The notes beneath the pieces are model-generated. The model saw only the letters and a program-made list of their open reading frames with translations. It searched no databases and had not been told where the DNA came from. From Penicillus capitatus (taxonomy: Eukaryota > Plantae > Chlorophyta): DNA of 64,000 nt. This document shows, piece by piece, positions 4,753 to 60,060 of the stretch (position 1 is its first letter; the number at the start of each line of letters is the position of its first letter). Position numbers and translations under genes: made by a program. Location of the stretch: contig OZ287705.1 in the NCBI GenBank assembly GCA_965649825.1, forward strand, positions 62,001 to 126,000, given 5' to 3'.

Positions 4753-5810
4753 ATGAAGGTCGGAGACGAAGGAGCCTTTGAAGCGGGAGCTGGACACCGT
4801 ATGCCACGCATGCAGCTGCCACAGGAAGACGCGAACAGTCTTCCTTCTCCGCGTCTCGTCCAGCTCAAACGCGAAATGGAGACGGGGCCCTTGAACGCCC
4901 CTCCATCTTGGTTCGAGGACTTCGCTCAGTCGTGTTTAGCTACGGCCTCGCGGTCATCACTGCTCGGGGTGGATCCATCTTCGAATCACCAGCACGAAGA
5001 CGCCTCTCTTGCGGATTCCCATTCGAACAGCACACATTCTGGTACGCACCAGGGCGTCTAAGGCTGCTCTTCTGATGGAACGTGTGGTGTAGACTCGAGC
5101 GATAAGTGCTGTAAAGATCCTGTTCGTGAAGGCGGGGAAACGAAACCGACTTCCACTCTCACGTGAGGTGCCGATCAGAGTGAGCGATGGTGACAGGTGC
5201 TATTGATAGTCGAGGTCGAGGGGTGCACGTGGTGAATGGCGCTCTCCGTTATCGTGGCGTCCGTCGCCGTCCGTGGGGCAAATACGCCGCAGAGATTCGA
5301 GATCCGAGTCAGAGACGACGCGTCTGGCTCGGGACATTCGATACGCCCGAAGAAGCGGCAATGGCTTACGACGTCGCCGCACGCAAGATTCGTGGCGGCA
5401 GAGCTGTCTGCAATTTCAAGCAAAGCACGTCACATCATCTCTCGTGATCCCGAGTAGTGACAGATGTGTCCTGTGGTGCAGATCCTTCGCCATCTATCAC
5501 TTCGCCGCGCAGACAAGAGGCGGCGAGATCAGTCGGGTTATGTTTCGCGGAAGCAACTGGGACTAGACGCCGGAATAAGAAGGCGCGATCGGAGACGGAA
5601 GAGAGCGAAGGCGAAGGGCCGCAAAAGGATCGTCACCGTCCGCGAGAGAAGACGGCGACAAGAGACGGAAGCGCCGTGTCGTCCAGGACGAATCCGACGT
5701 TTCTCGGATCGCCCCGCGATCGGAAGCTGCTGCGTCAGATCGATGAAGACGCGGATCTGTTTGAATCCGCTTCGGCTTTGCTGATGCTGCGCGATGCCTC
5801 TCGCACTTGA
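4753..5810 (+). CDS. AP2/ERF-domain transcription factor (multi-exon; may have further upstream exons from ~4460)
   Basis: Canonical AP2 domain [56 protein letters not shown] at ~5250-5420. Frame-consistent small introns link 4753-5041 and the last exon ending …[20 protein letters not shown] (TGA 5810). The last intron needs a GC donor (5425-5481). Confidence 0.85.
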
Positions 5811-6127
5811 CGTCCATCGGTCAGACGACGACGATCATCACCATAAAGGATTGTGTATCTTCAGTGTTGAATTAGTTCTCCTGCTAGCCACTTTCTCCGT
5901 CGTTCATAATTCTTTGCGGTTCGCATTCTCAGCGACAGGAATCGCGAGGATGACGATCTGGACTTCAAACCCACATGAGAGGTGTGGACTGTACATTCAT
6001 CCAATGTAAAACACGCGTACGAGATGCGAAGCCTGCATCGGTCGCGTCAGCAGCATCATTACGTTGATTGCGTGACGACATTACGGCGTTTCCTGTTCCA
6101 GAACCCGTTCTTGACGCGTTTCGCATC

Positions 6128-6991
6128 ATGGCTGACCGTCTGCAACTTCCCATCAGCAACAGGAAGCGTGAGTCTGCTCTCCTTCCCTTCTGCGACCCCA
6201 GCGACGTTGCGCTGAGCAGTCGAGGACATCCTGATGTGGCGCGATGCGCGTCTGTCCGGAAGTATCTTCGGCGGTCTCACTGTCGGATACCTCGTCCTCC
6301 AGTGGAGTTCTCTCTCCGTCTTCTGCCTCGCTGCCTACGCATTGCTCACCGTCATCGGCGGCCTGCTCGTGTGGCACTGCGCAGCACCTTTCGTGAATAT
6401 GTCGTTTCGACACGGCTATCAGACGCTTATCGTGCATGTGCACTGCAGGGACCCTCCCATCCCCTCCTTCATTCGAGATGGCCTCTCCGAGGAAGACGTG
6501 AAGAAGCAAGTGGAGAGGATTCTACCCAGAGTCAACGAAGTCTTGGGTAAGGAGAGACAGCCGACCGTCGACAGTGGGCGATGAATGATGTGACGTTCTG
6601 CAGCGATGGTTCGTTGTGTCGTCAGCGGTCAAGATCTCACGCTCTCCGCAAAAGTCGTCCTGCCGTTTCGATCGTCCTGCTGACAAATGATAAGCAGGTC
6701 CTGGGAGGACTGTATGCGGTGGCACGCGTGACGTCCACCTTATCACTCCCGACCTTGGCTTACCTGGGTGATGAAGAGTCATGGCCAGTCATGAGGATGG
6801 CGTGTGGAAGCATGCGTTTTCTAGGCGTGTTGGTGGCGTTCTTGGCACCAAAGGTGTACGAGATGCGCAAAGATGAGATCGATGGCTACTTGGAAGTGGC
6901 CAAGGAGAAGCTCAAAGTCCTTTTTAAGCAGTTGGAATCGTCGTTGCAGAAGATTCCGAGAGCCAAACGTGTCATGAAGAAGGCCGAATGA
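6128..6991 (+). CDS. Reticulon-family protein
   Basis: ATG 6128, intron GTGAGT…GAGCAG gives …LEDILMWRD, followed by two long hydrophobic hairpins and C-terminal …APKVYEMRKDEIDGYL…KIPRA, typical of the reticulon homology domain. Confidence 0.88.
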
Positions 6992-7890
6992 GAACTGTTT
7001 TGGAGAAGCAATCTGATCAACCGTAGAGACTTACCCGTTACAACGATAACTGCGAGATAGATCGTTGTGAATGGACAAAGTGTATTGTCAAGCATACATC
7101 ATTGAATGCAACGGATCAACTTTAATTGCCGAATTCTTCGATTTGGCCGATCCAAAGTACATAGGCATCGTATCGTCTGCCGAAGGACCTTAACTTGCCT
7201 AAGCGATCCTGCTTTATGCGAATCAGCGATCTCATCCAGCAATAACATTCTGAGCTGGACGTGCAGTATCTTCAGGACGTCGCCGGATTCGGCACAGTGG
7301 CCAGTCAACCTTTCTCATGAATCGTTTCTTGGTCTCCTCTGTCTACTACACCATCATCTTTCCTTTCTGGCGTTTCTTCGGTAACCGAAGGTACAAAGAT
7401 GCTTTCGGACTTGGATTCATCATGGCCGTAGTTAAGTTGCTTGATATGACCTGTGTGGAGTCCAAGACGATGAGTTATATCACGGAGGTGTCGGGCACTG
7501 GATACATCTCAAAAGAGAGTCAGAAGATTCCTCAGCGCAACTGCATTGTGCGCTCTAGTGATGTTGCATACATGCATCAAAGACCAGTTGACAGCGCTCG
7601 CATCATCTCCGTCTTCCGCGGCAAGAAGCACACAGAGGTTGACAGTCTCCTGCACAACAGGTCAGTGTCGTGTATGCACTGTGTCGCGAACGCTTGCGAA
7701 ATTATGGAAAAACGGCAATCCGCTGTCCGTCTATCGTAAGGCATGCCAAATTGATCCAACCCCTCCCTGCTCCGGTTTCGAAATGGATGACTTCGGGAAC
7801 GATATTAAATGATTAATACTAATCGTTCTAGTACAAGTACGGAAGAAAAATTCAATGTCCTTCCTCATCGTTGCAGAACTCGTCGTCGCA

Positions 7891-9810
7891 TTACTCGTCA
7901 TCGTGATCATAGACATGCGAATAAACGAAGGCCCGAGCCTTCTCGAAGACGAGGCGCCCGATCTCTCTCCCCAGAAGTTTTCCGCCGTCGTCATCTGCCT
8001 GGACGTGAATGCCACCAGGGAAACGCGAGAATCCGGATTCGTCAGAGGCATCGGTCCAGGTCTCCCAGCAAAGGACGACGTCGTCAGCGGGGACATATCC
8101 AACAGACATCGGACCGGTGTTCGGGATGTCGCTGAACCCAGGCAGCACGTCGGATTTGGGCTCGAAGAAGGAAGTGCCCGCCGCTGATAAGTAGCACGAC
8201 GGGCCTCTGTATTTGTCGTCGCCGAAGAAGAGACGCAGCGCTTCGGCTCCGGCGGCGCTGAAGGTGGAGTGACCAGATGTGTAGGCGGCGAAGTTGGGTG
8301 TGACGAAATCTGCCGCCTGGAACGGACGCCATTCGCTGATGTTGGTCAGACCGACGCCCATGTAAGGTCCTCGCCATGCGAGTCTCACTCTACAGGGTCA
8401 CACTTTGTGATCTGCCACAGTAGAGGGAGCTCTGTTCTTACTCTGCTCCGAATCCGCCGCACTGGATGACGGAGACCGGACGCGCGTAATCGAAGGTGAC
8501 CTTTGTCCTCCAGCTGGCGATCCCGGCATCGTAAACGGCGTTCCCGACCACGAAGAGCAGTCTGGCCGTCTCTAACTGATCGAGACCTTCGGCCAAAGCG
8601 GCATCTCCTGCGATCTTCCACAGATGTCCTGGCGGAGCCGTCGTATCGGGTCCATCCGCCCAGTACTCCGCAATGATCTTCCGCACATCGTCCAAGGCGG
8701 CAGAGATCCTGGAAAGCACAGAGAGTGAGCATCGAGATGATCATCACGCGATGGTGCAGCCAGTACTCAAGAATGGCGCGGAACTGACGTCTGAATTCCG
8801 AACTTGCGGGGGGAGGCGGCGGCAGCAGCGCCTCTCCCGTCGTCTCGTCTCCTTCTTCAAGAGCGAACGTGGTGAAACGACCCGCCCACGGACATGCGAA
8901 CTCCTGTGGCGTGCATTCGGGTGTTCCAAATTGCTCCAGGGTTTCCGGAATGCAGAGCGGCTGCCATCGGCCGATGTCGACGATCTGGCTGTCGCAGTCC
9001 GTTATTCCGGCGAGTGTCTGAGGCGCATTCACAGGAGCGTAACCCGTTGGGTCGACATCTCCAGGTTTCAGTGTACCGTTGGGTTCAAAGCCGTCCTCCG
9101 TGATCTATTCGACAGGCGATGGCGATGCAAACGCCTTCTCCAAGGAATAGTGACTTGCCTGGTCGACGACACGTTGACAGGCGACGGCACCGGCAACGAC
9201 CTCGGCGCGGCGCTTGTCCAATGTAAACAGGAACTCTTCCAGCCCTTCAGGCGGCAGCTGCACGGCGAAATCGATCAGAGGAATGATGTCGTCGATGGTC
9301 CTGCACGAGAAGGCTTCGTACTGTTCGAAGACCGTGGAGAAGCTATCGAAGTCTTCGAAGAGTGACTTCACCGCCCAGAATCCGGCGCCGTCCATTGTGT
9401 TGGTCACCGTGTCCTCGTCAACTTCCCATGGTAGTATCAGCGGATTACCCGTCGTCGAACGAAATCCTGTGTAGACATGCGGAAAAGGCCTAACGCAAGA
9501 GGCTCCTACGTTTAGTGGTGAGCGCGGCTGCCTCGAAGAGACAGGTTCCGGTGAGTCCGCACACGCGACCGGCACCCGGCGGCGTTATGGCGTCGAGGTT
9601 GAACTTGGTTTGGAGCTGCGCGACGATAGACCATGCGTACGGGCGGTTGTCCCCGTCTCCGACGGGGCCGTCAACGGGGATGTTGTGAATGAAGTCCGAA
9701 GCCGTTGCGCATTGCGATTCGCAAACATCGCGCGAAAACTGAACACAGTGACCGAAGGCAAAACAAAAGAGGACAGCGTTAAAGAGAAGCAAATGCTTCG
9801 CCGGCGACAT
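7891..9810 (-). CDS. Vanadium-dependent haloperoxidase (PAP2 superfamily, bacterial-type VHPO), signal peptide, 5 exons, ~570 aa
   Basis: All vanadate-binding motifs present: K-x6-R (KVTFDYARP), YTSGHS, R-x5-H (SRFPGGIH), plus EYWADGP…PPGH. N-terminus MSPAKHLLLFNAVLFCFAFG is hydrophobic. Four small introns restore the frame. Confidence 0.9.
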
Positions 9811-12121
9811 TTGACGCCTGTCTGGTAACGTTCGTAAAACAATGCGAGACGTCATGGTCGGTCGTTGCCAAAGATGCTGCACGCACACACGCACGAACTT
9901 CAAAAAAGAACTGCTCTCCTTCTCAACCGTATAATCATCTGTACAATAATGGATATGTCAGTCGTGATTATGAATGACGTCGCCGTCGTCTGACCCGATT
10001 GCGGTGCAGGGCGTCGTCGGAGGCGCCTGACGGGACAGCTGCTGGTGATCACCATCTGTACACGCACGCATGAAGGTTAAGAGGGCGTTGCGTAGAAGCT
10101 GTCGGGAAGGCGCCTATAGGTTTCGAGTGTCCATTCGAAGGCTTTGGAACCGCTGTCGACGAAAAGCTCCTCGCCGCGTTCGACGCGTTCCGGAAACTCG
10201 CACATCAGGAGAGAATCGGGATAATTGTGCAGAGAATCGCCGGAGATACGACGTACCTGACCTCCAACGTCGAGGCGGACGAGAGCTGCGCCGCGATTCC
10301 CACGAAGACGCAGCGAAGACGGCTGTTCATAGCTTCAGAAAAAAACCTGGCGTGCCTTGTCCGCAGCTGCATATGAATTCCATACTAAGCAATTGAACGA
10401 CGCACGCACTCTGGATGTCGAATTTCAGGTTTCGACCCAAAGCCACAATCTTCGCGACAGCGTATCAACGACGTCGATCTGCAAACGGCAGTCGGTCTGA
10501 ACGACACGCGCAAAGGACGACGTTCTATCAACGTCTTCTTATTCTCTATCGCGTCTTTTTCTGTCAGTCTACTGCGGAATGCCTTAAGAATAACTGTCGA
10601 ACGTCGTTCTGTGATTTGACGGCGAGAGAAGACTATTCCGTCCGGCGTTGTCTGTTTGACAGCATTGGTTTTGTCGCCTCTTTGTGCGGATCGAGAGATT
10701 GTTAATCACGTTTGGCCGCGGAGCATGACATGAATGGCTGAGCCGTCCGTCCAAAGCAGTTACTTCTGTCGAGGTATTCGGACACAGAAACACGAAACGC
10801 TTCGACAGTATCCGCCATTCGGCTTTCCTGCCGAAGCAGAGCGTCTATACGTCTGTCCTCGATGCCATTTCATTTCAACAGAAGTGATAGAGTTCATCAA
10901 CAATAAAGGGGCTGTTCACCGTATCCGTCCTTTCATTGCTGACGGCCAGGAATAAACAATCGAGTAGAGCATCAAGTTTTACGTCAGAGACGAATGGTAG
11001 GTGCTTGTTTACCGCCTAAGGGTTCATAATAATGAAAAACCTTTTGACTGGGGGGAGTCAAGATTGTCGACCTGTAGGTGAAGGACCGACTCCTGTGCGA
11101 ACCTCAGTTGTCTTTTATATATTCGTTTCTCCATCTAGACAAACGACGACGTACAAACGTTGTAAGCTAGCTAGAAAGCAGTTTCCCTTGCCGTTGTGTA
11201 AAGTCGACATGCAGGATAAGGAAACAAGTAGATGGCCCGTTGTCCGGTGCGACAATGGCAGGGATCGAATGTCTAACAAACGGATCCGTCAGTTGAGCGG
11301 ATCAAAACGATGTCAACGGAGAGACACGGGCGCACAAACCGGACGCCATGGTCGGTGCATCTGCGCGTCGTCGTTACGATGTGCGATGGTGTAGGTGCGG
11401 AATCTGCGAAGGACGCTCTTCTTTGTCTGCGTGTCTGGATCAAAGCGACAGAGAAAGTGTCCGACAGATTGGAAGACGACGCTTGTCGAGGCCGACCGGG
11501 AAGTGCACGTAACGATCGCTTCCTACTCACTTACAGTGTACGTGATCTTTGACTGGTGTCCGTCCGACACACGTCTGACTGAGGTCATTGCGAAACCCTC
11601 GAACTCTGTTGTTCCTACCCCAAAGCAATGCGGCCGGGTGGGCTGCCCTTATCGAGGCAACGAACAAGTTAGCTAGCTCTAAAGGCGAACCGAGATCACG
11701 TGTTGTCCATTGTCCAAGACGATCGCCAGCACATTTTTTGAGCCAAAGAGCATTCGGCGCGGTTAATTCACAACATATGGTTCATAGAGTTCGAACGTGA
11801 TAACTCATGAGTTGGGTTGACACGTCTGTCCGAAGCCGAGGTTCATTAAGTAGCATACACTTATTTATTATTGGTAGCAACGGAACAGCAAAAGCGATGT
11901 GAAATTCAATGGATATTTTGACCATGTGACTGACACACGGGTGAAAGCATTCAAGTGGTCACCACTCATAAAGACCGAGGCGCTCGCAGTAGGATGAAAT
12001 AAAACTAGGCGCTGTGGTGTGGTGACTTGATTACAGTGCATGAGAGACGGACGGATGGCGTTCGCAGTGATGCTGCCTTTGCTGTCGAAACATGATGTCA
12101 CACGGACTTGGATGGATCGGC

Positions 12122-29403: not shown

Positions 29404-31098
29404 TCAAATCAGCTGCAAAGCACGCAAGTGTTCTTGAATCGCTTCATTTGGTTCCACTTTCGCTTCTTTCATGTAGTTATAAACTGTTTTCGCATTTTTC
29501 GCGTCGCCTTTCCTAGCACAGTATGCCATCACCGTCTCATACGGACCTTCGGTCGGCGTAATCTCCTCATTCCTTTGCATAGCGATTCGCACAGCCTTCA
29601 GCACCTGCACGGCAGAGTCCACACGGTCATGATCCAGTGCCAGCCGGATCATAGAATCCGTCATGCTGACCGACGGCCAATAATTCTTCGAAGTAAAACC
29701 ATTCCAGCACTGAAGCGCACATTTGACATCGGATGCCTTGAGGCACATGGCAAACCATATCCTGTAGCCACGGTCCGACAATAAGATACCCGACGATCTC
29801 ATCGGGCTTACCACCTCAGATACCTTCTTCATAGCCTCTTCCTGAGAATAGGTGCCATTCTCCCACAGACGCTGAACAATCTCTAACTGCGCAGCGAAGT
29901 TCTCTCCGTTACGGCCAATGTCATCTATGTCCTTCCCAGGCAGCTTTGACAATAAACTCAATGCCGTGGTCAAATTTCCTTTTTGCTCAAAGAGGTGTAT
30001 GATGCTTCTGAATGTAATGCTGTTCGGTTTCAGCTTGAGCTCCTTCATGCGATCAAGACAGTAGGCAATACAGGTCTCAAGCTCATTGTCTGTTAACTCC
30101 ACATCTGCCAGCGTTTGAATAAGAAAATCAAAGGAGGGACGAGTGTGTGTTCTATTGTCTCTGACCGATTTCTTCAAGTAACCCAGCGCCTCATTCGACC
30201 GTCCAAGTTTACCGAACAGTTTGATCAGAGGCAAGTAGGTAAACGCGTCAGGTTTCATCTTTTTCGATTTCATCGATGACACGATGAGCTTGCATTCTTC
30301 CAAGTACATCGCGCCAGTGGCACTGTCGACGTTTTCGGCATAGACCGCTAACATGGAATTGAAGCCTCGTAAATGTTCTCCAAACTTCGTGACGAGTTCA
30401 TCAAATGTCTCTTTCGCACGATTCACGTCTTTCCCTTTGCTGCAGACACTGATCAGCGAACGATACGTCACTGGATCTGGTGGGATCTTATAGTTTTTCT
30501 GCATCTGGTGAAAAATCTCGAATGCAGCGTCAACATCGCCAGTGTTTGCATAGGCGTGGATGATGGTATTGAAAAGCAACCTGTCTGGTTTCAACCTTGA
30601 CGCCAGGATATCGTCAAAAACCCGTTTCGCCATGTCCACGTTGTTCATCCGTATACAAGCTATCATAACATCCAGATAGATCGTCCTGTCGATCAAGACA
30701 CCGAGAGACTTCATTTCCCCGAAGAGATCCAGGATGTGAGAGTAGGAGCGGAAACGTGACAGTCGTCGTATTTCACGACCGTAGCTAGCTGTGAGTTTCG
30801 GTAGACGGTATTTCTTACGCATGAAATCATCGTCCACCTCTTGATGCTCCTCTAGGGCGTCATGAAACCCACGGCGTTGCGTCACGCCTGTCCAGCAGAG
30901 CGCCGTCTTGACATCGACGCTCTTTGGCATGGGGGATGGGCATCTGCGTGAAGCAGGGTAAAAAGAACCGATCGGTGAAACGGCAGATCTGGCCGGGGGA
31001 ACGCCGTCAGTGTCTGGAAGCGTCGGAACGACGGCGACGAAACGCGAATGAAAGAGCCAACGCCCGACGCTGGCGTAGTTTCGCGCAGAGCGGCGCAT
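29404..31098 (-). CDS. Pentatricopeptide repeat (PPR) protein, 564 aa, intronless
   Basis: Uninterrupted ORF with ~35-aa helical repeats (…PDRLLFNTIIHAYANTGDVDAAFEIFHQMQ…, …PDPVTYRSLISVCSKGKDVNRAKETFDEL…, …PNSITFRSIIHLF…). Arg/Ser-rich N-terminus resembles an organelle targeting peptide. Confidence 0.93.
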   Translation of the reverse strand: MRRSARNYASVGRWLFHSRFVAVVPTLPDTDGVPPARSAVSPIGSFYPASRRCPSPMPKSVDVKTALCWTGVTQRRGFHDALEEHQEVDDDFMRKKYRLPKLTASYGREIRRLSRFRSYSHILDLFGEMKSLGVLIDRTIYLDVMIACIRMNNVDMAKRVFDDILASRLKPDRLLFNTIIHAYANTGDVDAAFEIFHQMQKNYKIPPDPVTYRSLISVCSKGKDVNRAKETFDELVTKFGEHLRGFNSMLAVYAENVDSATGAMYLEECKLIVSSMKSKKMKPDAFTYLPLIKLFGKLGRSNEALGYLKKSVRDNRTHTRPSFDFLIQTLADVELTDNELETCIAYCLDRMKELKLKPNSITFRSIIHLFEQKGNLTTALSLLSKLPGKDIDDIGRNGENFAAQLEIVQRLWENGTYSQEEAMKKVSEVVSPMRSSGILLSDRGYRIWFAMCLKASDVKCALQCWNGFTSKNYWPSVSMTDSMIRLALDHDRVDSAVQVLKAVRIAMQRNEEITPTEGPYETVMAYCARKGDAKNAKTVYNYMKEAKVEPNEAIQEHLRALQLI

Positions 31099-31198
31099 CG
31101 TGGGCGTTTCCTACGTCCTCCGTCAGATGTGACGTACAAAGGCGAGCTGATGCTGATCATTTGTTCGATTTTCTTACTAACGTTTCTGGGTTTCTATT

Positions 31199-31649
31199 GA
31201 TGATAGGTGAAGGTGCCAAGCAACGGGTAAAAGTGCTAAAGATTCCTGACAAGAAACTGTCAAAGACGGTCGGGGCTCAGAAGGCAAAACTCGCACAGAT
31301 GGAGCTGAGAATCGAGGCGATGGAAGCCAGGCCGCGAGGAAGCAGAATACATCGCCCGCAAGCGCAACACCGAGCGCGCGAGTTCCTCTCTGAAGATGAA
31401 GATCGACGAAGCGGAGATCGCGTGCGAAGGGAGCAGACTGCAGAAGGAAGTGGACCGTTCGCGAAGGAAGGCCAAAAAGCTGAGATAGCGGCTGAACCAG
31501 CTGAACGTGGAGATGGAGGGGGCGAAGCGCACGAGCAACAACCGCGAAGGAGACCTAGAAGAGCAGAAGCAGCCCAACGGCTACCTCCAAGGAGTATTCT
31601 GTGTGAGCAGGATGTTCACATGGTGACTGGTGATGTGACAGATGTGTAA
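31199..31649 (+). pseudogene. Degenerate coiled-coil coding remnant, divergently oriented from the PPR gene
   Basis: Heptad-like frames (…LAQMELRIEAMEA; SLKMKIDEAEIACEGSRLQKEVDRSRRKAKKLR*RLNQLNVEME) broken by a frame change and an in-frame TAG. Confidence 0.35.
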
Positions 31650-34089
31650 CTTTAGGAAACAGCACAAGCCTACGCGAAGTCCCAGGCTCAGAACAAAGAG
31701 CTTATGAAAGGAATTGTGGCCCCACGTCGGTGGGCCGTCAACGACGCGGAGCTCGACGCCGCGGGAACGAGACGGATGAAACGCGCGAGCACCGTGTTGC
31801 TCACATTGCGTCATAGGCGACAGTTGACTGTCATGCGGTGCCATCGTCCGACGCGACGTTTGCATACGCCCGCAGAGACCAAGATTAAAGCAGTTCTGTC
31901 CATGCTGCAGGTTGCGGTCTTGATGGCTTCCTCTTCCCCAAGTGCCTATCGCGGCTCGTCAGCAACACCGACTTCTCCGGCTTCCGACGCTGCGAAGAGC
32001 GACCGACCGCCATCGGGCAGTCGCGCGTCGCGCGTCCCTTCACGCATTCTTTACTCCGTCTGTGACCCTCCGGCCGCACCCAATCGCGATTTGCACATCG
32101 GCGGATCGTCCTGTTCGAACGTCGACGACGCCACGGTGTAGCGCTGACGTCGTCCGACATTGTGCGGATTCACACTGGCGAATTCCATTTCATACGCCGT
32201 CATCTCTCTCGTCTCCACGCCACCGTCCGGTGACAGTGTCGTTCGCCTCAACCTAAGAAGAAAGTCATAGCGACAGGAAAGACACTCGAGATGATTCAGA
32301 GACCGTGGGCCCATGCCGATATCAGGTTCGTAGAGCTCGAAGCCGGACGGCTTCTGATCGGCAGTACGGCCGAACGGGTATGTCGGATAGTGGGTCGCGT
32401 CAACGATCACATGACCGTCCTCTTCGAAGGCGTTGATAAAGTGAAACGAGAAGGTCGTCTCCTCGAGCTGCCGACGAACGTCAGACAGGTCACACAACAA
32501 TGAGACGGTTGGGTAGCATGGTGTGCGTACCTGGTAGACCTTTGGTGCGGCGTCCCTCGGTACATCACCGTCGGGTGATGGACGAGGCAACAGATGAAGC
32601 TGAAACACTCGAGGTTTTCTCGTGTGTCGTCTTTTAATACAGACATCTCACTTCGTGAACGCCGCCATCTTCGAAGACGAATGCGTTTCCAGCGCCGACA
32701 CTCGGATCGAGAAGTTTCTTCATATCCATTCGCATTGGAAACTGGAGATCGAGTGTTGCGAGTGAGGCAATCGTATCGCCGGCTTTACCTTGTTGAAGAC
32801 GTAATAGTTTTCAGTGACGCCGATGGAGTGCAGGAGTGAGAGGTCGTCAAAGGAATACGTCTGTCGAGCACGAACCTTCAGATCTTCGTCAATTTCGCAG
32901 AGGCTGATATCCGTTTGCACAAATGACGAAGAGAGGGTCGGCTACAGAAAAGAACAGCTCAAAGGAAAGTTAAGCGAAATGGATTTTGACCACGTATTGT
33001 GTCATAGACAAGACAGTGACGTCACGTCGCGCATCGTATACAGCGTCGCCGACGCCGAAAACGGAATCAGCATCCAGATGACGGCAACCTAGAACGATTG
33101 GATACTTCATTAGCGCTAATGCCATGTACCAAACGAGAAGGAATCGCGAGAGCCTCATTGGAATTCTGTGGGGGAGAGAACAACTGCTTCATGCCGAGAT
33201 GCCATACAGTAGAAAAAACATCTTGCTTCGATCGCGGATCGATCGTCCTCAGTGTGTAAGGGTCGAGTACCGTCAAATAGGCACCCTGCAAAGAAAGGCG
33301 TTGCAGAACGACGGCCGCATCACGCAACAGATGACGATACTTCTTGTGGGATGAGTAGTTTGTTTCCTGCCGCAATGGGCATTCCGTTTCCCGGGTTCCT
33401 GGGAAGGAATGACGCGAAAAGCAATGTGCCGTTCTTTGGCACGGATCCGAACACGCCAGTAAACAACCGCCTGCCAGCCTCCTCTTCGATCATAGAACTG
33501 CGTTGCAAGACATGATGCGACTGAGAAGTGCCGCAGGGTCGGCCCTACTGAAGTGTCCGGACAAATCTGGACCGAAAGAAGGCCTTGCCGTCTCGAATGG
33601 CGATGCTTGCGATGATGCCATTCGCGTCGAAGAACGAACGAAACGTCTCGCCCAAGAACTCAATCTCTCCAGGGCCATTCCTATCGCCACGCGTTGGATA
33701 CGAATGGCATGAGAATCGCGTGTCCGCTACCGGAAGTAGGTGCCGCGCAGCTCTGCCGGAAGTTCGCCTTCGACGTTCTCGACCCAGTATCCCTCGGGGC
33801 ATTCTTCGACGGATATGTAAGCGGAGAAGTAGCGCCTAGAAAAGCACAGAACGGTGCGACGACGACGCGTCATTCGGCAGTACTCTATGCAGATGTTTGT
33901 TCGTGCACGCTCGTCCTCCGTTTGTTCCGCCAGAGAGGACGGCGACTGGGGACTCGGACGACTGGTGAAAGTGCATTCGGACGCTTTTGGGATGTCGGCA
34001 ATGCGCTTCGGTGCCCGATTCTTGCGAGAAAAACTGCGCGGAATGCAAAACGTGGTACCAGAGACACTAGCGAGACGAACGGATTTCAT
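31581..34089 (-). CDS. Carotenoid oxygenase / RPE65-family (CCD/ACO-like) protein with transit-peptide-like N-terminus; many introns; 3' end uncertain
   Basis: VEGELPAELRGTYFR|NGPG…FDANGII…DGKAFFRSRFVRT; LLHSIGVTENYYVF; FSFHFINAFEEDGHVIVD; MEFASVNP…GRRQRY are all RPE65/CCD-type motifs. ATG 34089 (MKSVRLASVS…). Confidence 0.82.
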
Positions 34090-35453
34090 GTTAACAGACA
34101 ACGCGAGGGAGAAAGGAATCGACTCTGATCTCAAAATAAGAACTAAAGCTTATGCGATTGGGAAATCGATGTTGAACTCCAGTCATGCTGGTGTCAGCAC
34201 ATGTGGTTCAGGCATTTCGTGCATCCATGATGCATGCCGTAGCTGATGTGACGCGTACCGCTCGAATCGATGCATCTAGTCAAACATCGCTTCAAACGAT
34301 CTTGGCACCGGCTGTGTATCGTCGTGCTGCAGTCTCTGGTCATGTTCCCTTAATTCGCGTTCATGATGACCCCGGAAACCAACGAAGTGGATGATTCGGT
34401 TCGGCGATGTTCATTCGAATATGGAATCGACGTGACTGCCGAGTCGCTCCACATAAGGTAACAAACAATCTCTGCCAACTGGCAACCTTTTCGTCCGATG
34501 GATGTGACTGGTCTCTCATAAACTTGACAGTTCGGCAGAAGAACAAAGAGATCCTCGTTGTCGAACTGCCATCAGACAAGATGTGCTGTCAGGTCATGGA
34601 TACTGGAACCAAGGGTAAAGGAGATGACGTGGACATCTCATGCAAAGATGCAGCGAAGAGCTGGGTGGTGCTCATGACAGTCGAATACGACGAGTTAACA
34701 CGATCCATTGTGTCACATGACGAATGCCATCACAGGAAGACGCTCTGGCATAACATGCGTCTGGCCCCACTCCTGCCAGACGACACTGGTATTCAGCATC
34801 CTGAGAGAGGTTCTAGCAATGCTTCGTCGTGTCCAAGAGATATCCGACAGAAGCCTTTCGATGGTTAGCAGCGTGTGTGGCTGTATGGAATCGCGGTCGT
34901 GGCGATGCGTGGTAACCGTCGTACAAATAAAACCTCCCGCCGACCATTGAGTCGTGTCTTTTCAGTTCGTCTGCTTCGTTCCTCTCCAACCGAGCTCCAG
35001 ACCACTGCGACTTGTGTGCGCACCACCTTCCTGTTGTTCGTGCGTTGGTCTGGCTTCGAAACACGCGTCCCTCAAACCGATCACGGAAGGAGGAGCAGAA
35101 CGCAGTCGGAGGTTTGTCGACGGAGGTCGTCTGTTGTTTTCCGCAGTGCTCCGACCCGCCCGGAGAGAACGACGACGGGCAGTGGAACCACGAGCGTGGA
35201 GGACGACGTGTACTGCGAAGTTTGCGTCCGAAGAAAAGCAAACTCCTAACCGACGCGTCAGAAACCGACGGGTCGTGCGTCGACTCTCCATGCAAGTAGG
35301 CTCTCCTGCGACCGCGCATCGTCTAAGCACGTTTGTTTCTTCAAGGAGGCTCTGAGGCCAATAGATTCCCGAGAGATTGCGATACCGCCCAACGAACAAG
35401 GCGAAAAGGGTATCACCGCGCACAACATCCTCAGGCGAAAAGGGCACCATTAC

Positions 35454-36406
35454 AGTTTCCCTGCCAGCGGCGCCCTCGGGAAATCCACGTGAGCCGAGTT
35501 AGCCATCACACCCAGGGGTCAACGCATGGTTGTGTGTTTCAGATGCAGCTGTCACCTGGCGGTGGCACCTGGCTGAGGCAGCTCTGCGGTGGGATAGGCG
35601 GAGTATGCGTGGACGTGGCGTCGTTCTGAAGCGCTGGGCCCGATCCAAGCCCCTCGCGTTCGGATCTGTCGCCGGTACCTTGAAGGATGCTGGCTTTGGA
35701 GGCCCCCACTCAGGACCCGCATTTCCCTTTTTTCTGTAAGGGTCTCTTGTTAGGGTCTTTTCTTTCGTCCTGAGTGGGTTTTTCATTTCGCCGTGTTAGA
35801 CATTAGTTTTTTATTACTTTGTTAGATCCTGCTCTTTCTGTTCTCCTTTCCGTGTTTAGAGTAAGTAGCCTCTTTCTTGACTGTACATTAATTTTTTTAC
35901 TTTTTCTATGTGTGCTCTGGCGACCTTTCTGTCGCGCTTAATTTTTTCGTGTTTATTGTTTCCCAATTTTATTTTTTCTCATTCCCTGTGCTTGCCTGTT
36001 TGTTACTGTGCTGTCTGGGCTTGAGACCGGCCACCTGCCTTCTTGACTGTGTGTTTCTCTGTTCGTGTTTGACTGCATGTGTGTTTTGCTCTTTTCTGTC
36101 CCTTCCTTGCGTGTTTTTTTATTAGCGTGCGCGCCGCCTTCGCCTCCTTAGCTGGCTCTGCAGGGGGAAAGCACAGTGAAGGTGTGGGGTAAGGCTTTGC
36201 ACGGGTCGGTGTCCCTGTCGTGGATGGTGACAGAAGCGGGCCCTGCAAGCTTTCGCTACCCCCCAGGTCAGATCCCTACCTCTGTCGTAAAGCATGACTC
36301 AATATGTGTGTGTCTGCCACTAGGCTGTGGGTCGGGTCGCCGTCCGCCTCCAATGGACAGCTGGCGATATACTTCACCCGAGGGCGCCGCACGGGCAGTG
36401 GAAACT
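35454..36406. mobile_element. Putative non-autonomous element (~953 bp) with imperfect 27-30-bp terminal inverted repeats and a T-rich core
   Basis: 35454-35480 AGTTTCC-CTGCC-AGCGGCGCCCTCGGG is the near reverse complement of 36377-36406 CCCGAGGGCGCCGCACGGGCAGTGGAAACT (14-bp exact core). 35730-36125 is strongly T-skewed. No TSD found. Confidence 0.45.
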
Positions 36407-38422
36407 AGGTGTTCGATGCACGGAGACACAGTATCGAATGTCGCCAGAGGACAACGCGTGTCAGCTGTGTCCTCCTAATGCAAACTGTGCATCCGATAAC
36501 GTCATTCAGCCGAACCGAGAGTACTGGCATCCGTATCCGTGCTCCTTACACATGCAGGAATGCCTGAGCCAATCGGCGTGCGATTTTGATCGAGAGGCGC
36601 AGCTGGTCGCCATCACAAAAGATGTGCACGACTGTGATCTCAACGCGGCCATTGAAAGTGCCTATGCCGAAGAACAATGCAACGAGGTCTCGTTTTCCTT
36701 CTCATAACCCCTTTTCTCCTATCTCTCGTGAAGCAGGGATACAGAGGACCGCTTTGTGGTGAATGCAGAAGTGGATACGGTCATACGTCTTCTTGGGACT
36801 GCGACCGATGTGACAAGGACCCGAGCATTGCCTACCTAGTTCTCTCTGTTGTCGTCGTCTTGGCACCCAGCAGCTTCGCCATCAGGAGTAGTCTGGGACC
36901 AGCTCTATCAAGTGGACAAGACATCGCGCGACTCCTTCGCCAAGTGCCAGCACGCAAGCTGATCAGGACCGTTTCTGTTCCGGAAGAACTCCAGTTGGCA
37001 GAACTCGGTGGTCCGTCAAGCAGAGTCGTCTCATCAAGGCGCCAGGCGACCGAGATCGCAGGCAGTCATGGAAGCGACGAAGATAGCCAACTGTCAGCCG
37101 AACTGGCCAAATGGAAACTCGTCGAGATCTTTAAGGTACATACAGCATCAGACGCGGCTCCGTAAAGAATCTCTGTTTCCAGATCACGATCAATTCTTTG
37201 CAGACGATTTCGGTGGTGATATACATCAGCTCCAACTGGACATCCTCGGCAAAGTCGCTGATCTCGGCAACAGGTAGGCCGCCATCGTCCCGCTTTCGGA
37301 TAAGGGACAGACTGTTCGATGGATAGATGTCGTTGGAGGCACGATGTTGAACACGGCGTCCTTTTCCATCGAATGTCTCATTCCGGTGGAGGCCGCCTTC
37401 CCCCGATCCATCCTTCCCCCGATCGTCGCCATAGCCGCTCCAGTTGCCGCTCTCCTCCTGCACGGCGTTTTCTGGTTCAGCGTGGCGATGAGATCCGCAG
37501 AGAGCTGGGAGTATTTGAAGAAGAGGTGGTCATTGAGCTTCCTTGCAGTTTCCTACCTGAGCTGTGTCTGGATCACCAAAAACGCCGTGAATGTGCTTTC
37601 CTGCGTCCGAGTGCGCCAATCCATCCACACAGGCGCAGAAAGCACGAGCTATCGCTGGACACAGACGACCACCGTCAAGTGTTTCGCAGGATCCCATGCC
37701 ATCCTTGTCAGTGTCCTTGGCCTTCCCGTCCTCCTTTTCTTCACGATCGGATTCCCAGTGCTGTTGTCGTGGAAGCTGCGAGAAAGAGAAACCTCGATCC
37801 TTCTCACGAGAGCTGGTTCGTGGATGCCACAGCGTTTCCGTATCGGGCTTACGCCGACAGGTTTGTCTACTGGGAATCCCTTGTCCTCTTCCGAAAAGCG
37901 CCGTTGACGATCGTCGTGGCAGTTGGATACCACCTAGGATCGAACCTCCAAGCCATCCTTGCCGTCTGCATCCTGACCACGGCACTGTACCTGCACACGA
38001 TATGTCATCCCTTCCGAAACGAATTTGCCAGTCTGAATGTGTATGAAGAGGCCGTTCTCTTTTTCTCGGACATTACCTTTGTCATGGCTCTCTTATTCAA
38101 TGACGATCGGATCGGAAATGCTCTGAGGGTAGTGCTATCAGTTTTATTTTTTCTGTCGATCTGTGGACTGTTGGCTTTCTTGGGCTTTGTCTTTTCTCAG
38201 GCAACCTTTGCCTATATGCGTGTCGTACTGGAAATAGAAGAGGTTCCACAGATCGATACGCTTGGCAATTTGCGAGTGATGCGCGAGTTCATGATCTTGA
38301 AAGTGGCGCAGAATGTCCCTCGTACGAGAAGCTTCATTCGTAAATCCAAAGCCGATGAGGAGCAAACAAACATTGGCCTGAACACCAGACGAGATTCGGC
38401 GGGTTTCTCCTCAGGATTGTGA
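36407..38422 (+). pseudogene. 5'-truncated Cys-rich ectodomain + multi-pass (7TM-like) membrane protein gene with frameshift at ~37785
   Basis: ACQLCPPNANC…YWH…C…GYRGPLCGECRSGY followed by many TM segments (…YWESLVLFRK…PF…LNVYE…). The frame changes at …AAGCTGCGAGAAAGAGAAACCTCG between ORFs 37344-37907 and 37319-38422. No start or signal peptide recognised. Confidence 0.7.
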
Positions 38423-39367
38423 CCGTCGCAAACGATGGCCTCGAGCCTTGTATTCATGTCACAGACGGTTGTCGCGTGTTATGAGAGATCTCTTTGAAAG
38501 AATAACACTTCTCGGACTGTCGGTTCCCTGCCATGCGTAACTGCGGTTAACGAGACATTCAGAATAGCGTCCAGAAAGACGAAAAAGCCACCGACGATCC
38601 ATCTCCGGGGCGACGGACGTCCGACGCGACTCCTCGGGTCGCATCGGCCGTCGCGTCGCGGGCCGCGCCATTGTTCGACTTCCTGAATGTGTTCTTATGA
38701 ATCTTAATGAAATCATCAGGTAAGGCTCAAGGGCCGATGCGCTGCTCATGCACTTCGTCCTTGATCTAGTAGTGCTGGCAGGCGACACTGTTTGATACGA
38801 GACTCTCTACATACACAACGACAAACGGGCTTCTTCCAGTCACCTCTGCGAAACAGAAGTGCAATCTCTACTCAGGCAACAAATATCACACTAGGCAGAA
38901 TAAGACAGTGAATAGAAACGGGATTGCTGTGCTGTATCGATTGTCACCAATCGATCGACCGAACGAACGAACGAACGCCGTTCTGGGTTCATCGAGCACA
39001 TGTTTCAGAAAGAGTTGAATGCGCACATGGACGACCTCCGGTCTCGTCTGCGCCCGAACCAAAACGAAAACAAGACACACCCAAGTGCAGCAACAAGGAC
39101 GACGGAGACCAAAACTTGGGTACTGCATACAGAGAAGGATAACACCGATCAAAAATTGCCCTCTCCCCCGCGCTCTCCCAGGCAAGAATGCGCATTTCAG
39201 CTTGGTCTGTGTTTGCTAGACGTACAGTACAGGAAAGAAAACTGACTACACAACGAGGGGCGATGTCGCCCGTTTCCTAGAGGCTGCTGGATTTCAAGAG
39301 GTCACAGAAATCGTACGGATCCAATCCGACAATCTTCCTCGTGGTCTTCTTCGGCAGGGCCGACATC

Positions 39368-41309
39368 ATGGAGGATGTCGACTCCGTCGGCGTCGAACCG
39401 CCTAAGAGACGAGAGAGTCCGCCGTCGTCGCAGAAGGACGTCTCGTTACCGGAGGAGGATGCCGTCGGACGATGCATCATCGTCGCGGTGGGAGTCTTCG
39501 TCCAGAAGGCCCGTCCGAATTCTTCGACGGCTGCACGCGAACGACATTGTGCGCTGCGCGTTGCGTCTCTAATGCGCTCACCGTCTTCTTCTGCACGGAG
39601 GCTGAAGTCATTGAAGCTGGGGGACGCGGAGAGCTGTCTCGGACTGGAGTGCTTCGTCGAGAGCGGTTCCGGACAGCGAGGGTCGCGAGGTCCTCCGGCG
39701 CCTGCGTCGTGGGACAGGCTTCTGGCCAATCTGCGGACGAACGAGGTCATGGTGTGTGGGGAGACGTATGTGCGTTCGACTTCCAGTTCGTTTGAAATGG
39801 AGCAGAAGGATAGATGGAGTGCGTACGTGCGCGTGCGCTTTCGCCGAGATCTGTCACATCACGCAACACCATCGGCTCGTTCGGCGAACAGTACGAGATG
39901 GCCGAGCCGTTCGCTCCCGGACAGCTGCTCAACGAGGGACGCTACCGAATCGTCCGCGAAATCAACCGTAAGACGGACGGCGTCCACTGTGCCGAGACGC
40001 TGTCGAGGCGTGCAGGCGGAGCGACAGCTGTCGTCTACGAGGCGGAAGACAGCGCCAGAGGCAGCGGTCGCGTTGCCCTCAAGGTCACGTCGTACAGTAC
40101 AGCCGAGAAGGCGAGGTCGACGCATGCGTGCCCGTGCGAAGGTGATGAATCTCGCGGAGCATCAGCAGAGTCTCTCGTTCAAGATGGTCAAACGCGAAGT
40201 GTGGTCTCACTCTTATCGAAAACGACGGTTGACATTGACTGCTGTGACGACAGGTTGAGTACGCCAGCTCCGTACGTCACCCCAACATCGTTCGGCTGCT
40301 CGACGTCTTCGCCGATGGGGACCACCTCATCCTCTCCGTCAGTCGCCTGTCCTGGTCGCCAGAATCGCTGACGGCGTGTTCGTTTGATCGCAGTGGGAGC
40401 TGATCGAGGGGAAGGACCTGCTGGACCTGCTGGAAGACGTGGGGGGCCGCATGCCGGAGGACATGGCCGCCTTCTTCGTCCATCTCATCCTCAGGGGCGT
40501 CTCCTTCATGCACGAGAAGGCATACTGCCATCGCGATCTGAAGCCGGAGAACTGCATGGTGGAGAAGAAGACGCAGAATCTGAAGATCGTCGACTTCGGG
40601 CTGTCGAAGCACCTCGATCTGGCCAACACGCTCGGGCACGGTTTCGATCGGCCACGCATCTTCTGTGCCGAGCGCGTCTCGTTCTAGGGTCGGCACGCCG
40701 GATTACATGGCGCCCGAGATGCTGGGGGCAGCGGACGAGCCGGAACCGAAGGAGGGACCCAGATACGATGCGACCGCCGTCGACGTGTGGAGCATAGGCG
40801 TTACGCTCTACCTCCTGGTCGCGGGGGCCTATCCCTTCGAAGTGCGATCGCAGTCGGGCGGCGGGTTCAGCGTCATCTCCGCTGTGCTGCTCTAGGATCC
40901 AGAGCATCCAAGCAGTATGGGTCACACCGTGGCCAACATCAAGAGGAACTCGATAAGGCCCTTTCCGTCCGAGGTCTCGTCGGAGTGTCGATCCCTGATC
41001 CGCTCTCTCCTGTCCCCGTCTGCTAGGAACCGTCCCCGTCTCAGAGAGATCTCCGAGAATAAATGGCTGTGCAAGAACGCCAAATCCTACGCGATCAAGA
41101 TACGAAGACCAGAGCTCTTTGTGCCGTCGTTGCGTCAGAGAGTCCGATTCCGTGATCGTTCGCCCAGCATCTCGTCGAAGGGACAAGAATCGCCTGGACT
41201 GGTGATGGATGACGTCGAAGAGATCCCTCGTCCGTCGGGGTGCTTCGGAGGACATCGCATCCTCCGACGTCTCTCTTCTCTTCTCGGTCGATTGGCGGCG
41301 AAGAAATAA
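39368..41309 (+). CDS. Ser/Thr protein kinase, SnRK2/CAMK-like, with N-terminal extension (copy 1)
   Basis: Spliced: INR|GATAVVY…VALK|VMNL…KRE|[19 protein letters not shown]…HRDLKPEN…IVDFGLSK…LG|[10 protein letters not shown]…[20 protein letters not shown]|DP. All catalytic motifs intact. Confidence 0.9.
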
Positions 41310-50025: not shown

Positions 50026-51134
50026 TCGAGAGTCGGGATCGGCGTCCTAGTCTGTGCAATTTATGGGATCTCTGGATAAATGGTTCTCTTTTTGCTGTGC
50101 TTATTCTTAGTCATATGCTCAAACTCAAGATACGGCTTTCTAGCTTACGTCGTACATTGCTCTCTCTTCTGGCCGTCCATCAACAAGAGCCTCGCAGGGA
50201 GGTTATCAAGCACAGTACATAATTTTCCTACAGGTAGATTTCTTGAAATATTTTTGCTTCATAAGCTTCGGTTATCCAGTAGCACACCAGAGATCATTTT
50301 TCATGCACAGAACTTGTTTTTTGACAGGCATAAACGTAAGAAGACAGGCCAAACCAGCTGTAGTTGGATTCTCTTATTGGGTTCCTGAGTTGTCAGAGGC
50401 TGTTATGTTTTAGCAACGGATTGAAATAAGCGTTGTAATGTCAGTTGTTTGAGGCCGTCGATGTTCGCAGAATGGATGCATAGAGTGAGATCACTGCCTC
50501 GACATCAAGCACGTTTCACTGGTGTGACCATCCAATGCCGATGCACATTGCCACGGAGCCATTTCGGTTGACCGTTAGGCGCTGTCAGGAATGGTCTGTG
50601 CGCATTAGGTGTCGAATGGATACCCTCAAGGAATTTAATCGGATCGTTTTGTTGTATGCGTGCTCTACTTGATTAGATAGATTAGATACTACTGATACGC
50701 AGTTCCACGTGTGACTCGTATCTAGCGATGGCTCCCGTTCGAGGAAATTCTATAGAGTGCGAAGGTGGACAGAAAAGGAAGCTGTTGAGTGGTGCAGCGA
50801 GAATGGTGACGGATCGCCTCGAATAATAGAAGAAAAAAACCGTGATGGACAAGAAGTACGTGCGCTCCAACCTTGGTGAGAGCATCTACTACTACGTTGT
50901 ACTGTTTGAGACTTTTTGGCAAAACGGAACGGAAATTCAGGCATCGGTAAAGGCCGGGCATAAGCACAAAAAAGATAATGACTTGTTGGATGTCGATTTC
51001 TAGGCGATGTGGTTTCCTTGCGATTCTGAGAGAGACTGTTGACAAGACAATAAAAAACATCGCTTTACAGCACAGCTAACTGTTCAGTAATGAAATTCTA
51101 AGCGTCGCGATCGAAGGGATTGGCAGACTCGCTG

Positions 51135-53102: not shown

Positions 53103-53969
53103 GATGTCGGCCCTGCCGAAGAAGACCACGAGGAAGATTGTCGGATTGGATCCGTACGATTTCTGTGACCTCTTGAAATCCAGCAGCCTCTAGGAAACGG
53201 GCGACATCGCCCCTCGTTGTGTAGTCAGTTTTCTTTCCTGTACTGTACGTCTAGCAAACACAGACCAAGCTGAAATGCGCATTCTTGCCTGGGAGAGCGC
53301 GGGGGAGAGGGCAATTTTTGATCGGTGTTATCCTTCTCTGTATGCAGTACCCAAGTTTTGGTCTCCGTCGTCCTTGTTGCTGCACTTGGGTGTGTCTTGT
53401 TTTCGTTTTGGTTCGGGCGCAGACGAGACCGGAGGTCGTCCATGTGCGCATTCAACTCTTTCTGAAACATGTGCTCGATGAACCCAGAACGGCGTTCGTT
53501 CGTTCGGTCGATCGATTGGTGACAATCGATACAGCACAGCAATCCCGTTTCTATTCACTGTCTTATTCTGCCTAGTGTGAGATTTGTTGCCTGAGTAGAG
53601 ATTGCACTTCTGTTTCGCAGAGGTGACTGGAAGAAGCCCGTTTGTCGTTGTGTATGTAGAGAGTCTCGTACCAAACAGTGTCGCCTGCCAGCACTACTAG
53701 ATCAAGGACGAAGTGCATGAGCAGCGCATCGGCCCTTGAGCCTTACCTGATGATTTCATTAAGATTCATAAGAACACATTCAAGAAAGTCGAACAATGGC
53801 GCGGCCCGCGACGCGACCGCCGATGCGACCCGAGGAGTCGCGTCGGACGTCCGTCGCCCCGGAGATGGATCGTCGGTGGCTTTTTCGTCTTTCTGGACGC
53901 TATTCTGAATGTCTCGTTAACCGCAGTTACGCATGACATGGAGCCAACAGTCCGAGAAGTGTTATTCTT

Positions 53970-58602: not shown

Positions 58603-58848
58603 TGTCGCCGGTCGGGTCGGACGAAAATACCAACAGCGGAAGACTTTTTTTGTTTACAGAGCAAGGGCAAACATGGTGCGAATTGTCCGTTTCAATACGC
58701 CAGTGGCGACGTGACATGCCTATGCAGGTGAGTCATCCTTGCGCCAGAACCAGAGGATGGCGCCTCAGGTGACTCAACCTGCACCCCCTCAGAACATGGA
58801 CCCATTGAAATCGAGGCAGTCACATCGCCAAGCCAGATCTTGGCGACA
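58603..58848 (-). repeat. 3' LTR (246 bp)
   Basis: Direct repeat of 60061-60306; differs at 58693 (C vs A at 60151). Confidence 0.96.
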
Positions 58849-58862
58849 CCACGCTTCCCGCC
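58849..58862 (-). promoter_or_regulatory. Polypurine tract-like sequence
   Basis: Minus strand GGCGGGAAGCGTGG directly precedes the 3' LTR. Confidence 0.6.
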
Positions 58863-60059: not shown

Positions 60060-60060
60060 C

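Follow-up and report, generated by a model that had tools for sequence, protein, structure and literature searches.

A probable vanadium haloperoxidase of the bacterial/fungal chloroperoxidase kind encoded by an intron-bearing gene of a probable green-algal nuclear genome

In a 64,000-nucleotide stretch of DNA (contig OZ287705.1, positions 62,001 to 126,000, forward strand; hereafter the window, with positions numbered from its first letter) we found that the span 7891-9810 is filled exactly by the coding region of a minus-strand gene for a predicted vanadium haloperoxidase (VHPO), with its ATG at 9810-9808 and its TAA at 7893-7891. The five exons, separated by four introns, splice to a product of 570 amino acids (aa). 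Judged from its sequence, this product is probably a haloperoxidase of the vanadium chloroperoxidase (VCPO) type, of the bacterial/fungal chloroperoxidase kind, and we think it likely to be a genuine vanadate-dependent enzyme. The gene adds one more member to an established enzyme family and lies inside an uncharacterised, apparently eukaryote-specific subclade of it; since its chemistry and fold are canonical, specialists should be only moderately surprised by it. The locus probably belongs to the nuclear genome of a green alga, with a bryopsidalean or a closely related ulvophyte as the likeliest host.

Gene model, family assignment and active site

We built the gene model by enumerating the GT/GC...AG combinations that keep the frame open and then aligning the candidate products with 17 homologues, among them several from intronless transcript contigs of ~2 kb. 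The resulting features, all on the minus strand, are as follows (slashes mark splice junctions).

7891-9810, minus: whole VHPO coding region; 5 exons, 4 introns, 570 aa
9510-9810, minus: exon 1, 301 nt; predicted leader, aa 1-22 (9810-9745), start of the N-terminal helical bundle, conserved C30 and C34
9467-9509, minus: intron 1, 43 nt, GT-AG, phase 1; AAC/GTAGGA...ACACAG/GA
9159-9466, minus: exon 2, 308 nt; N-terminal helical bundle, probable diverged DUF6851 domain
9105-9158, minus: intron 2, 54 nt, GC-AG (assigned by homology), phase 0; CAG/GCAAGT...GAATAG/AT
8767-9104, minus: exon 3, 338 nt; linker, conserved C240, C254 and C267, RWQPLC motif
8709-8766, minus: intron 3, 58 nt, GT-AG, phase 2; TGA/GTACTG...TTCCAG/GA
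8442-8708, minus: exon 4, 267 nt; EYWADGPDTTAPPGH at 8668-8624, W382..K385..R392-P393 at 8512-8477
8390-8441, minus: intron 4, 52 nt, GT-AG, phase 2; AGA/GTAAGA...CTGTAG/AG
7891-8389, minus: exon 5, 499 nt including the stop; F438..S443-G444-H445 at 8292-8269
8160-8098, minus: insertion PKSDVLPGFSDIPNTGPMSVG in exon 5; clade-specific, bracketed by C470 and C512
8028-7993, minus: S526-R527-FPGGI-H533-VQA-D537 in exon 5; predicted vanadate His region

A preliminary description of this DNA, made from its letters and open reading frames (ORFs), had proposed four spliceosomal introns, and our model agrees with it: three are GT-AG and one is GC-AG, all are short (43-58 nt), and together they restore the frame. 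Retention of any single intron leads to a stop or a frameshift, e.g., read-through of intron 1 meets a stop and unspliced intron 4 gives an immediate TAA. When the 570-aa product was aligned with the intronless transcript-derived homologues, all four junctions were gap-free and colinear. The GC donor of intron 2 is needed, as splicing from either of two GT donors close by (9170 or 9167) would delete the conserved VVDQ that is present in every homologue, so this assignment rests on homology. Two other candidates were rejected on the alignment: an intron 3 donor at 8784, which costs six aligned residues where the chosen donor fits the homologues gap-free (EFRRQFRAILE/ISAAL), and an intron 4 acceptor at 8384, which costs two residues. 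An in-frame ATG 45 nt upstream (9853-9855) could add 15 residues, MTSRIVLRTLPDRRQ, to the leader; the start of the homologues coincides with the ATG at 9810 and not with the one at 9855. With its junctions supported by homology, the gene model appears intact and complete. By tblastn the window holds a single VHPO copy, and a search downstream of the stop for TGTAA and AATAAA poly(A) signals found neither, an uninformative result.

A Pfam search with the protein gave a match to VCPO_2nd (E = 3.9e-15, 56.8 bits against a cut-off of 27) and matches below threshold to PAP2 (E = 0.0077, 16.4 bits against a cut-off of 27.2) and to DUF6851 (PF21167; E = 0.059, 14.2 bits against a cut-off of 27); an NCBIfam scan gave zero matches. 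Sequence homologues reach E = 1e-200. A phmmer search against the PDB found NapH3 (E = 1.6e-19), 9ptr, XhnO11 (9l8x), NapH1, the Zobellia vanadium iodoperoxidase (VIPO) and Curvularia VCPO, and recovered no brown or red algal vanadium bromoperoxidase (VBPO) at E ≤ 1. The motifs listed in the preliminary description (K-x6-R, SGH, R-x5-H and EYWADGP…PPGH) are all present, namely EYWADGPDTTAPPGH at aa 330-344, K385-x6-R392-P, S443-G444-H445 and R527-x5-H533, and, as the VCPO_2nd and NapH3 matches and the homologues down to E = 1e-200 show, chance cannot account for them.

Aligned with Curvularia VCPO (1idq), residues W382, K385, R392, F438, S443, G444 and H445 fall on W350, K353, R360, F397, S402, G403 and H404, respectively, and in the phmmer alignments R527 and H533 fall on the SRxxxxxH motif of NapH3, 9ptr and XhnO11. 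In the C. inaequalis numbering vanadate is bound by Lys353, Arg360, Ser402, Gly403, Arg490 and His496, the last of them covalently. H445 corresponds to the acid-base His404 of VCPO, a position at which NapH3 has Phe. All seven vanadate-site residues are kept, as are the W350 and F397 equivalents, and these nine active-site positions are invariant or nearly so across a 161-sequence alignment of relatives; the W350 and F397 equivalents, which we take to match the lining of the halide pocket in the VCPO chloroperoxidase type, are invariant (161/161). The sequence SRFPGGIH, flagged earlier as unusual, is indeed so: P529 is unique to the window protein among the 161 aligned relatives, 132 of which have Tyr, and within the green-algal clade described below the position is relaxed, with Y, M, H, F, E and P all seen. 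Halide specificity cannot be read from the sequence, and an effect of P529 on it is speculation.

Predicted fold, secretion and competing functions

We built an AlphaFold2 model with a 109-sequence alignment, and its confidence was very high (pLDDT, the predicted local distance difference test, 94.3; pTM, the predicted template modelling score, 0.93), with lower pLDDT in a helix at residues 3-18. The best Foldseek match was NapH1 (E = 5e-22, TM, the template modelling score, 0.75), followed by NapH3, XhnO11, VIPO and fungal VCPO; over NapH1, NapH3, XhnO11 and VIPO the TM was 0.71-0.75, and the fold is the two-helical-bundle one, its second bundle holding the predicted active site. Matches to the Ascophyllum and Corallina VBPOs were marginal (E = 0.005-0.05, TM about 0.13-0.21). 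The rankings of both phmmer and Foldseek therefore bear out the earlier proposal that the protein is of bacterial type rather than a red or brown algal VBPO.

The best structural matches are thus the Streptomyces NapH1/Mcl24-type VCPOs (3w35, 3w36), NapH3 (8cxl) and XhnO11 (9l8x), at E = 5e-22 to 2e-20 and TM 0.74-0.75, with which the window protein shares a two-helical-bundle monomer and the positions of the K/R/S-G-H/R/H motif. Identity to this group is only 18-24%, and its members are cytoplasmic enzymes of bacterial meroterpenoid clusters, whereas a signal-like leader, ten clade cysteines and a 21-aa insertion mark the window protein, which has no surrounding cluster and keeps at H445 the catalytic His that NapH3 and XhnO11 lack. 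The closest prokaryotic homologues are bacterial proteins that combine DUF6851 and VCPO_2nd (PF21167 + PF22778), from Cyanobacteriota, Acidobacteriota, Actinomycetota (Nonomuraea), Myxococcota, Planctomycetota and others, annotated as "vanadium-dependent haloperoxidase" or "PAP2 family". These align at 30-41% identity with identical active-site residues, but they lack the insertion and the cysteines and have Gly/Ala at the position of D537. A link to the DUF6851-associated enzymes had been suggested before; it holds at the level of these alignments, while the window protein's own DUF6851 match stays sub-threshold. Curvularia inaequalis VCPO (1idq, 1vnc) shares the fold class (Foldseek E about 1e-12), the site residues one to one and the H-x3-D motif, but it belongs to another subfamily (~15% identity, TM 0.52-0.56) without the DUF6851-type N-terminal bundle. 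It is a secreted eukaryotic enzyme. The VBPOs of Ascophyllum (1qi9/5aa6) and Corallina (1up8) resemble the window protein in superfamily and chemistry and are apoplastic, multigene enzymes of seaweeds, but they form a separate superfamily branch and would represent a separate acquisition.

The structural comparison also bears on whether the protein might instead be a secreted PAP2-superfamily enzyme, an acid phosphatase or phosphoesterase, in which the His would act as nucleophile on phosphate esters and no halogenation would occur. The full phosphatase signature is in place (K385-x6-R392-P, S443-G444-H445 and S526-R527-x5-H533-x3-D537), and D537, completing an H-x3-D known from phosphatases as well as from fungal VCPO, is invariant among the green-clade proteins (22/22), where 103 bacterial relatives have Gly/Ala. 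Foldseek aligned class A acid phosphatases with the C-terminal half only (E about 1e-3; ~280-300 alignment columns), there is the weak Pfam match to PAP2, and PDB entry 3bb0 shows dephosphorylation by apo-VCPO. We nevertheless consider this reading unlikely, as PAP2 scored under its cut-off and VCPO_2nd well over, as the two-bundle 570-aa architecture fits VCPOs, unlike a single ~220-aa PAP2 domain, and as the W350 and F397 equivalents, presumably of the halide site, never vary among the relatives.

Recruitment of a VHPO homologue for non-halogenating chemistry, e.g., a NapH3-like rearrangement or another metabolite oxidation, seems to us more improbable still. Its appeal lies in the best PDB sequence match being NapH3, an alpha-hydroxyketone isomerase, and in the possibility that the unique P529, together with the clade-specific insertion (residues 482-502, confidently modelled at pLDDT 91-94), could reshape the substrate pocket. 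The SGH and the full vanadate cage are kept here and in all 161 relatives, unlike in NapH3, 9ptr and XhnO11, and among the neighbouring ORFs examined there was no biosynthetic gene cluster around the gene, both of which argue against it.

The hydrophobic leader noted in the preliminary description was also found by us: MSPAKHLLLFNAVLFCFAFGHC has a 12-residue Kyte-Doolittle mean of 2.5, the N-terminus showing a basic residue and then a 14-residue hydrophobic core, with similar leaders in 17/18 clade members, and a hydrophobicity scan found no internal membrane-spanning-like segment. The protein has two N-x-S/T sequons and ten cysteines conserved in the green clade (C30, C34, C90, C197, C240, C254, C267, C399, C470 and C512). 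These features suggest a secreted, disulfide-rich protein.

Several points weigh against a halogenating, secreted enzyme of the origin we favour. The catalytic His is missing from all three of the solved structures nearest in sequence (SGF in NapH3, SAS in 9ptr, SGS in XhnO11), and since NapH3 is an isomerase, halogenation is not universal in the family. Because the PAP2 phosphatase signature (Kx6RP, SGH, SRx5Hx3D) is complete, motifs alone cannot exclude phosphatase chemistry, and P529 replaces the prevailing Tyr two residues past R527. The signal peptide was judged by hydrophobicity alone, the trees presented below are neighbour-joining only with an outgroup attachment of only 55%, and the best database match of the protein is only 58% identical. 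This last value belongs to a search of a 15-billion-protein collection in which we found neither a transcript nor an exact protein of this copy, so that one may ask if it is an unexpressed or decaying paralogue; a branch length of 0.36, as compared with 0.06-0.21 for most members of clade A, and the unique Pro at a conserved Tyr position point the same way. Such decay is very unlikely in our judgement, given that 570 codons are open over five exons, that every residue invariant in an 18-sequence clade alignment is kept along with all ten clade cysteines, and that the AlphaFold2 model is of very high confidence.

Returning to a vanadate-dependent haloperoxidase as the preferred reading, we propose the following mechanism, in which vanadate dependence and halide oxidation are expected by analogy with known enzymes. 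The leader would be removed in the endoplasmic reticulum and the enzyme exported. Vanadate would be bound through H533, with the oxyanion held by K385, R392, S443, G444 and R527; H2O2 would then yield a peroxovanadate, H445 serving as acid-base catalyst. Oxidation of a halide approaching beside W382 and F438 would give hypohalous acid or an X+ equivalent guided by the enzyme, and this product might halogenate or oxidatively cross-link extracellular or wall substrates. Roles in the formation of halocarbons and bromophenols, in defence, and in cross-linking of walls or wound plugs in coenocytic thalli are speculation.

VHPO sequences have been described in fungi, in bacteria and in the brown and red algae, and we know of no gene sequence that has been tied to the haloperoxidase activities of green seaweeds. 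PMC5270595, citing Ohshiro 1999, refers to a vanadium-based bromoperoxidase in Ulvella lens, a green alga. According to PMC6864650, bromoperoxidases have been purified from the bryopsidaleans Penicillus and Rhipocephalus, the Penicillus enzyme being classed there as heme-dependent. Our literature search found no paper tying VHPO genes to Caulerpa, Ostreobium or other siphonous green algae or Bryopsidales, and none mentioning DUF6851; homologous VHPO proteins are already present, unremarked, in public proteomes. The window gene is a credible candidate for green-seaweed halogen chemistry. More broadly, it would mean that siphonous green algae carry small VCPO-type families, predicted to be secreted and unrelated to the classical algal bromoperoxidases, which offer candidate genes for halocarbon and bromophenol production in green seaweeds, for H2O2 detoxification, and for oxidative cross-linking in the wound sealing of giant single cells.

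Relatives, insertion-bearing clade and origin

The nearest named relatives of the protein (39-51% identity) are from Caulerpa lentillifera and Ostreobium quekettii, both Bryopsidales and both with multi-copy families: five C. lentillifera proteins (with tandem gene numbers g2552-54 and g2580-81) and at least four O. quekettii proteins. Among the best 120 matches these two were the only named eukaryotes, and there were no other Viridiplantae. Vertical inheritance across green plants, which the preliminary description had named as evidence against its reading, is thus a pattern we did not see among these matches. The bacterial DUF6851+VCPO_2nd family is very large, with 8,437 representative clusters at E ≤ 1e-3 in a profile search and, in the GTDB species genomes, at least 570 family loci in more than 10 phyla, the best of them aligning with residues ~50-77 to 560 at 30-41% identity.

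We computed neighbour-joining trees from Kimura distances with 200 bootstraps, and in these the green-algal VHPOs formed one clade with 98-100% bootstrap support. One of its subclades held the window protein, the Caulerpa proteins and unnamed transcripts (99-100%), and the other consisted of the Ostreobium paralogues. These green proteins share with ~36 further proteins an insertion of 21-26 aa, between strands at about residues 470 and 512, with the pattern ...PG[VLF][ST][DN].PN.GP...GY.P; in the window protein it is PKSDVLPGFSDIPNTGPMSVG, aa 482-502. The further insertion-bearing proteins include a EukProt entry of the ciliate Tiarina fusa, two other EukProt entries, and environmental transcripts with A-rich untranslated regions, and the non-green members of the group score PF21167 significantly. 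All 58 insertion-bearing sequences formed one clade with 100% bootstrap support even when the insertion columns were removed, and the insertion was found in 0/103 bacterial proteins and 0/80 of the best GTDB loci. The ten green-clade cysteines are likewise lacking in bacterial relatives. The green clade is nested in this insertion-bearing clade and is not sister to bacteria. When partial PDB sequences were used as an outgroup they attached beside the eukaryotic clade with 55% support, probably through long-branch attraction.

We take these results to suggest that the bacterial DUF6851+VCPO_2nd family has a eukaryote-associated offshoot, of which the gene is a member and which has expanded into small multigene families in siphonous green algae. 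Because the insertion-bearing clade is wider than the green one, the transfer would be old and its immediate donor may not have been a bacterium; an old transfer is consistent with the introns shared between paralogues and the host-like base composition described below, and with the ten conserved cysteines. The most economical account is one old transfer from a bacterium to a eukaryote followed by patchy inheritance or secondary transfers, with the green family as one branch, the direction and the donor being read from sequence relationships. The earlier suggestion of a domesticated horizontal acquisition is therefore kept in part: the best 120 matches fit it in lacking a vertical green-plant pattern, but a recent or direct step from bacterium to green alga needs revising. 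The patchy eukaryotic distribution makes the family useful for testing how genes pass from one domain, or from one eukaryote, to another, and the uncharacterised clade that the insertion marks may be a source of halogenation biocatalysts. For brown algal VHPOs, acquisition from bacteria has been proposed (PMC11765636).

A wider reading can be put forward tentatively, as a possibility that we think doubtful when all of its parts are taken together. It holds that these proteins are a previously undescribed, eukaryote-specific subfamily of secreted, disulfide-stabilised VHPOs with a structured 21-26-aa insertion; that the subfamily may go back to a single ancient event in which a gene of the bacterial DUF6851 family was transferred; that it may have spread patchily to siphonous green seaweeds, to the organisms behind a ciliate data set, and to protists, with giant viruses as a possible vehicle given the AT-rich, intron-less and ORFan-rich contigs of some members; and that the expanded Bryopsidales family might be the missing genetic basis of green-seaweed halogen chemistry or of oxidative cross-linking in the wound plugs and walls of giant coenocytic cells.

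Several further contigs carry relatives of the window protein. On three of them (L087, gene at 8727-10436; L088, gene at 7200-8777; and the contig of P0303) insertion-bearing relatives lie in AT-rich (32-39% GC), intron-less, tightly packed and ORFan-rich surroundings, with neighbours that have EGF, zf-MYND+Fic, ankyrin and PA domains, a PA-domain gene being directly upstream in two. These contigs could come from a giant virus or from a compact protist genome; since a scan of IMG/VR found only distant VHPO relatives (24-33% identity), a viral link stays a guess. A 10-kb ENA contig (L086) has two tandem, intronless, insertion-bearing VHPO genes at 311-2059 and 5001-6698 (582 and 565 aa) with a cytochrome b5 gene between them. 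The protein P0022, encoded at 1-1635 of the environmental contig L085 (JGI 3300030539), was sister to the green-algal clade in our first tree with 99% bootstrap support. Its contig has A-rich flanks, and the protein has a eukaryote-style leader, MKSSVVTLSLLLLLFNQAFS, and a significant DUF6851 match; L085 looks like a transcript from a eukaryote.

Genomic setting and paralogues

Through an exact look-up of a pentatricopeptide repeat (PPR) protein, the window was mapped to a 512-kb long-read contig of ENA analysis ERZ25074695. Two further contigs, L002 from the same analysis and the syntenic L001 from a second one, have 53% GC, as the window does, and a tetranucleotide correlation of 0.93 with it. 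Each has two further VHPO paralogues, arranged head to head (L001 2000-7026, L002 2099-7167) and placed between NFACT/DSPc and RecA genes; outside the VHPO gene itself we found no synteny between the window and L001 or L002. The two copies differ in their introns: one has counterparts of window introns 1, 3 and 4, the second a counterpart of intron 2 only. In the former, as seen on L002, the introns match window introns 1 and 3 in position and phase, with a candidate match for intron 4, and in the latter, on both contigs, a GT intron lies at the position and phase of window intron 2. As the window introns are shared in position and phase with these paralogues, the introns predate the duplications.

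The coding sequence of the VHPO gene has a GC content at third codon positions (GC3) of 0.67, within the range of 0.58-0.71 seen in the window ORFs that we picked as likely coding (GC3 ≥ 0.58 and, at second positions, GC2 ≤ 0.52). Downstream and convergent to it, ~0.9 kb from its stop, is a plus-strand gene at 6216-6988 with a reticulon domain, seen as two ORF pieces (Pfam E = 1e-14 and 3e-6). The window also holds PPR genes, exons of an RPE65/carotenoid oxygenase, and an SnRK2-like kinase whose best PDB matches are plant SnRK2s (SRK2E/SAPK10; E = 1e-32 as compared with 1e-24 for other CAMK-like kinases). Ten further ORFs of the window had zero Pfam matches, and scanning the window for Rfam families and for tRNA genes gave no match. 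That this is a green-algal genome, as the preliminary description had it, gains indirect support from the Bryopsidales relatives, from the plant-SnRK2-like kinase, and from the reticulon and PPR neighbours.

This setting bears most directly on a last alternative, that the gene comes from contaminating bacteria, from an assembly chimera, or from bacterial DNA inserted so recently that it is not yet assimilated. One might suspect as much of a family that is so overwhelmingly bacterial, represented here in a metagenome assembly, but we regard the idea as effectively excluded: the gene has four frame-restoring introns with positions and phases common to its paralogues, its GC3 is like that of neighbouring ORFs, eukaryotic genes lie within ~1 kb of it on a 512-kb long-read contig, and the best bacterial identity is only 30-41%. 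The introns shared with paralogues point to a long residence of the gene in its host.

Elsewhere in the window we observed an inverted duplication between 30161-41453 and 50992-63972, in three colinear megablast blocks of 93-98% identity with a spacer of ~9.5 kb. Each arm holds RPE65/carotenoid-oxygenase exons, a PPR gene of ~564 aa and an SnRK2-like kinase gene. The right arm has ~1.7 kb (58604-60295) that is extra relative to the left arm, most of it taken up by a 510-aa zf-CCHC zinc-knuckle ORF (58911-60443, minus strand) that may be a gag-like mobile-element remnant. The PPR protein, encoded by a single exon (29404-31098 on the minus strand; 63020-64000 on the plus strand), is one of an expanded family peculiar to its lineage. 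We found 19 relatives sharing 47-67% identity with it, every one on a long contig from ENA metagenomes and five on the window's own 512-kb contig, and the next best named match was only 22% identical.

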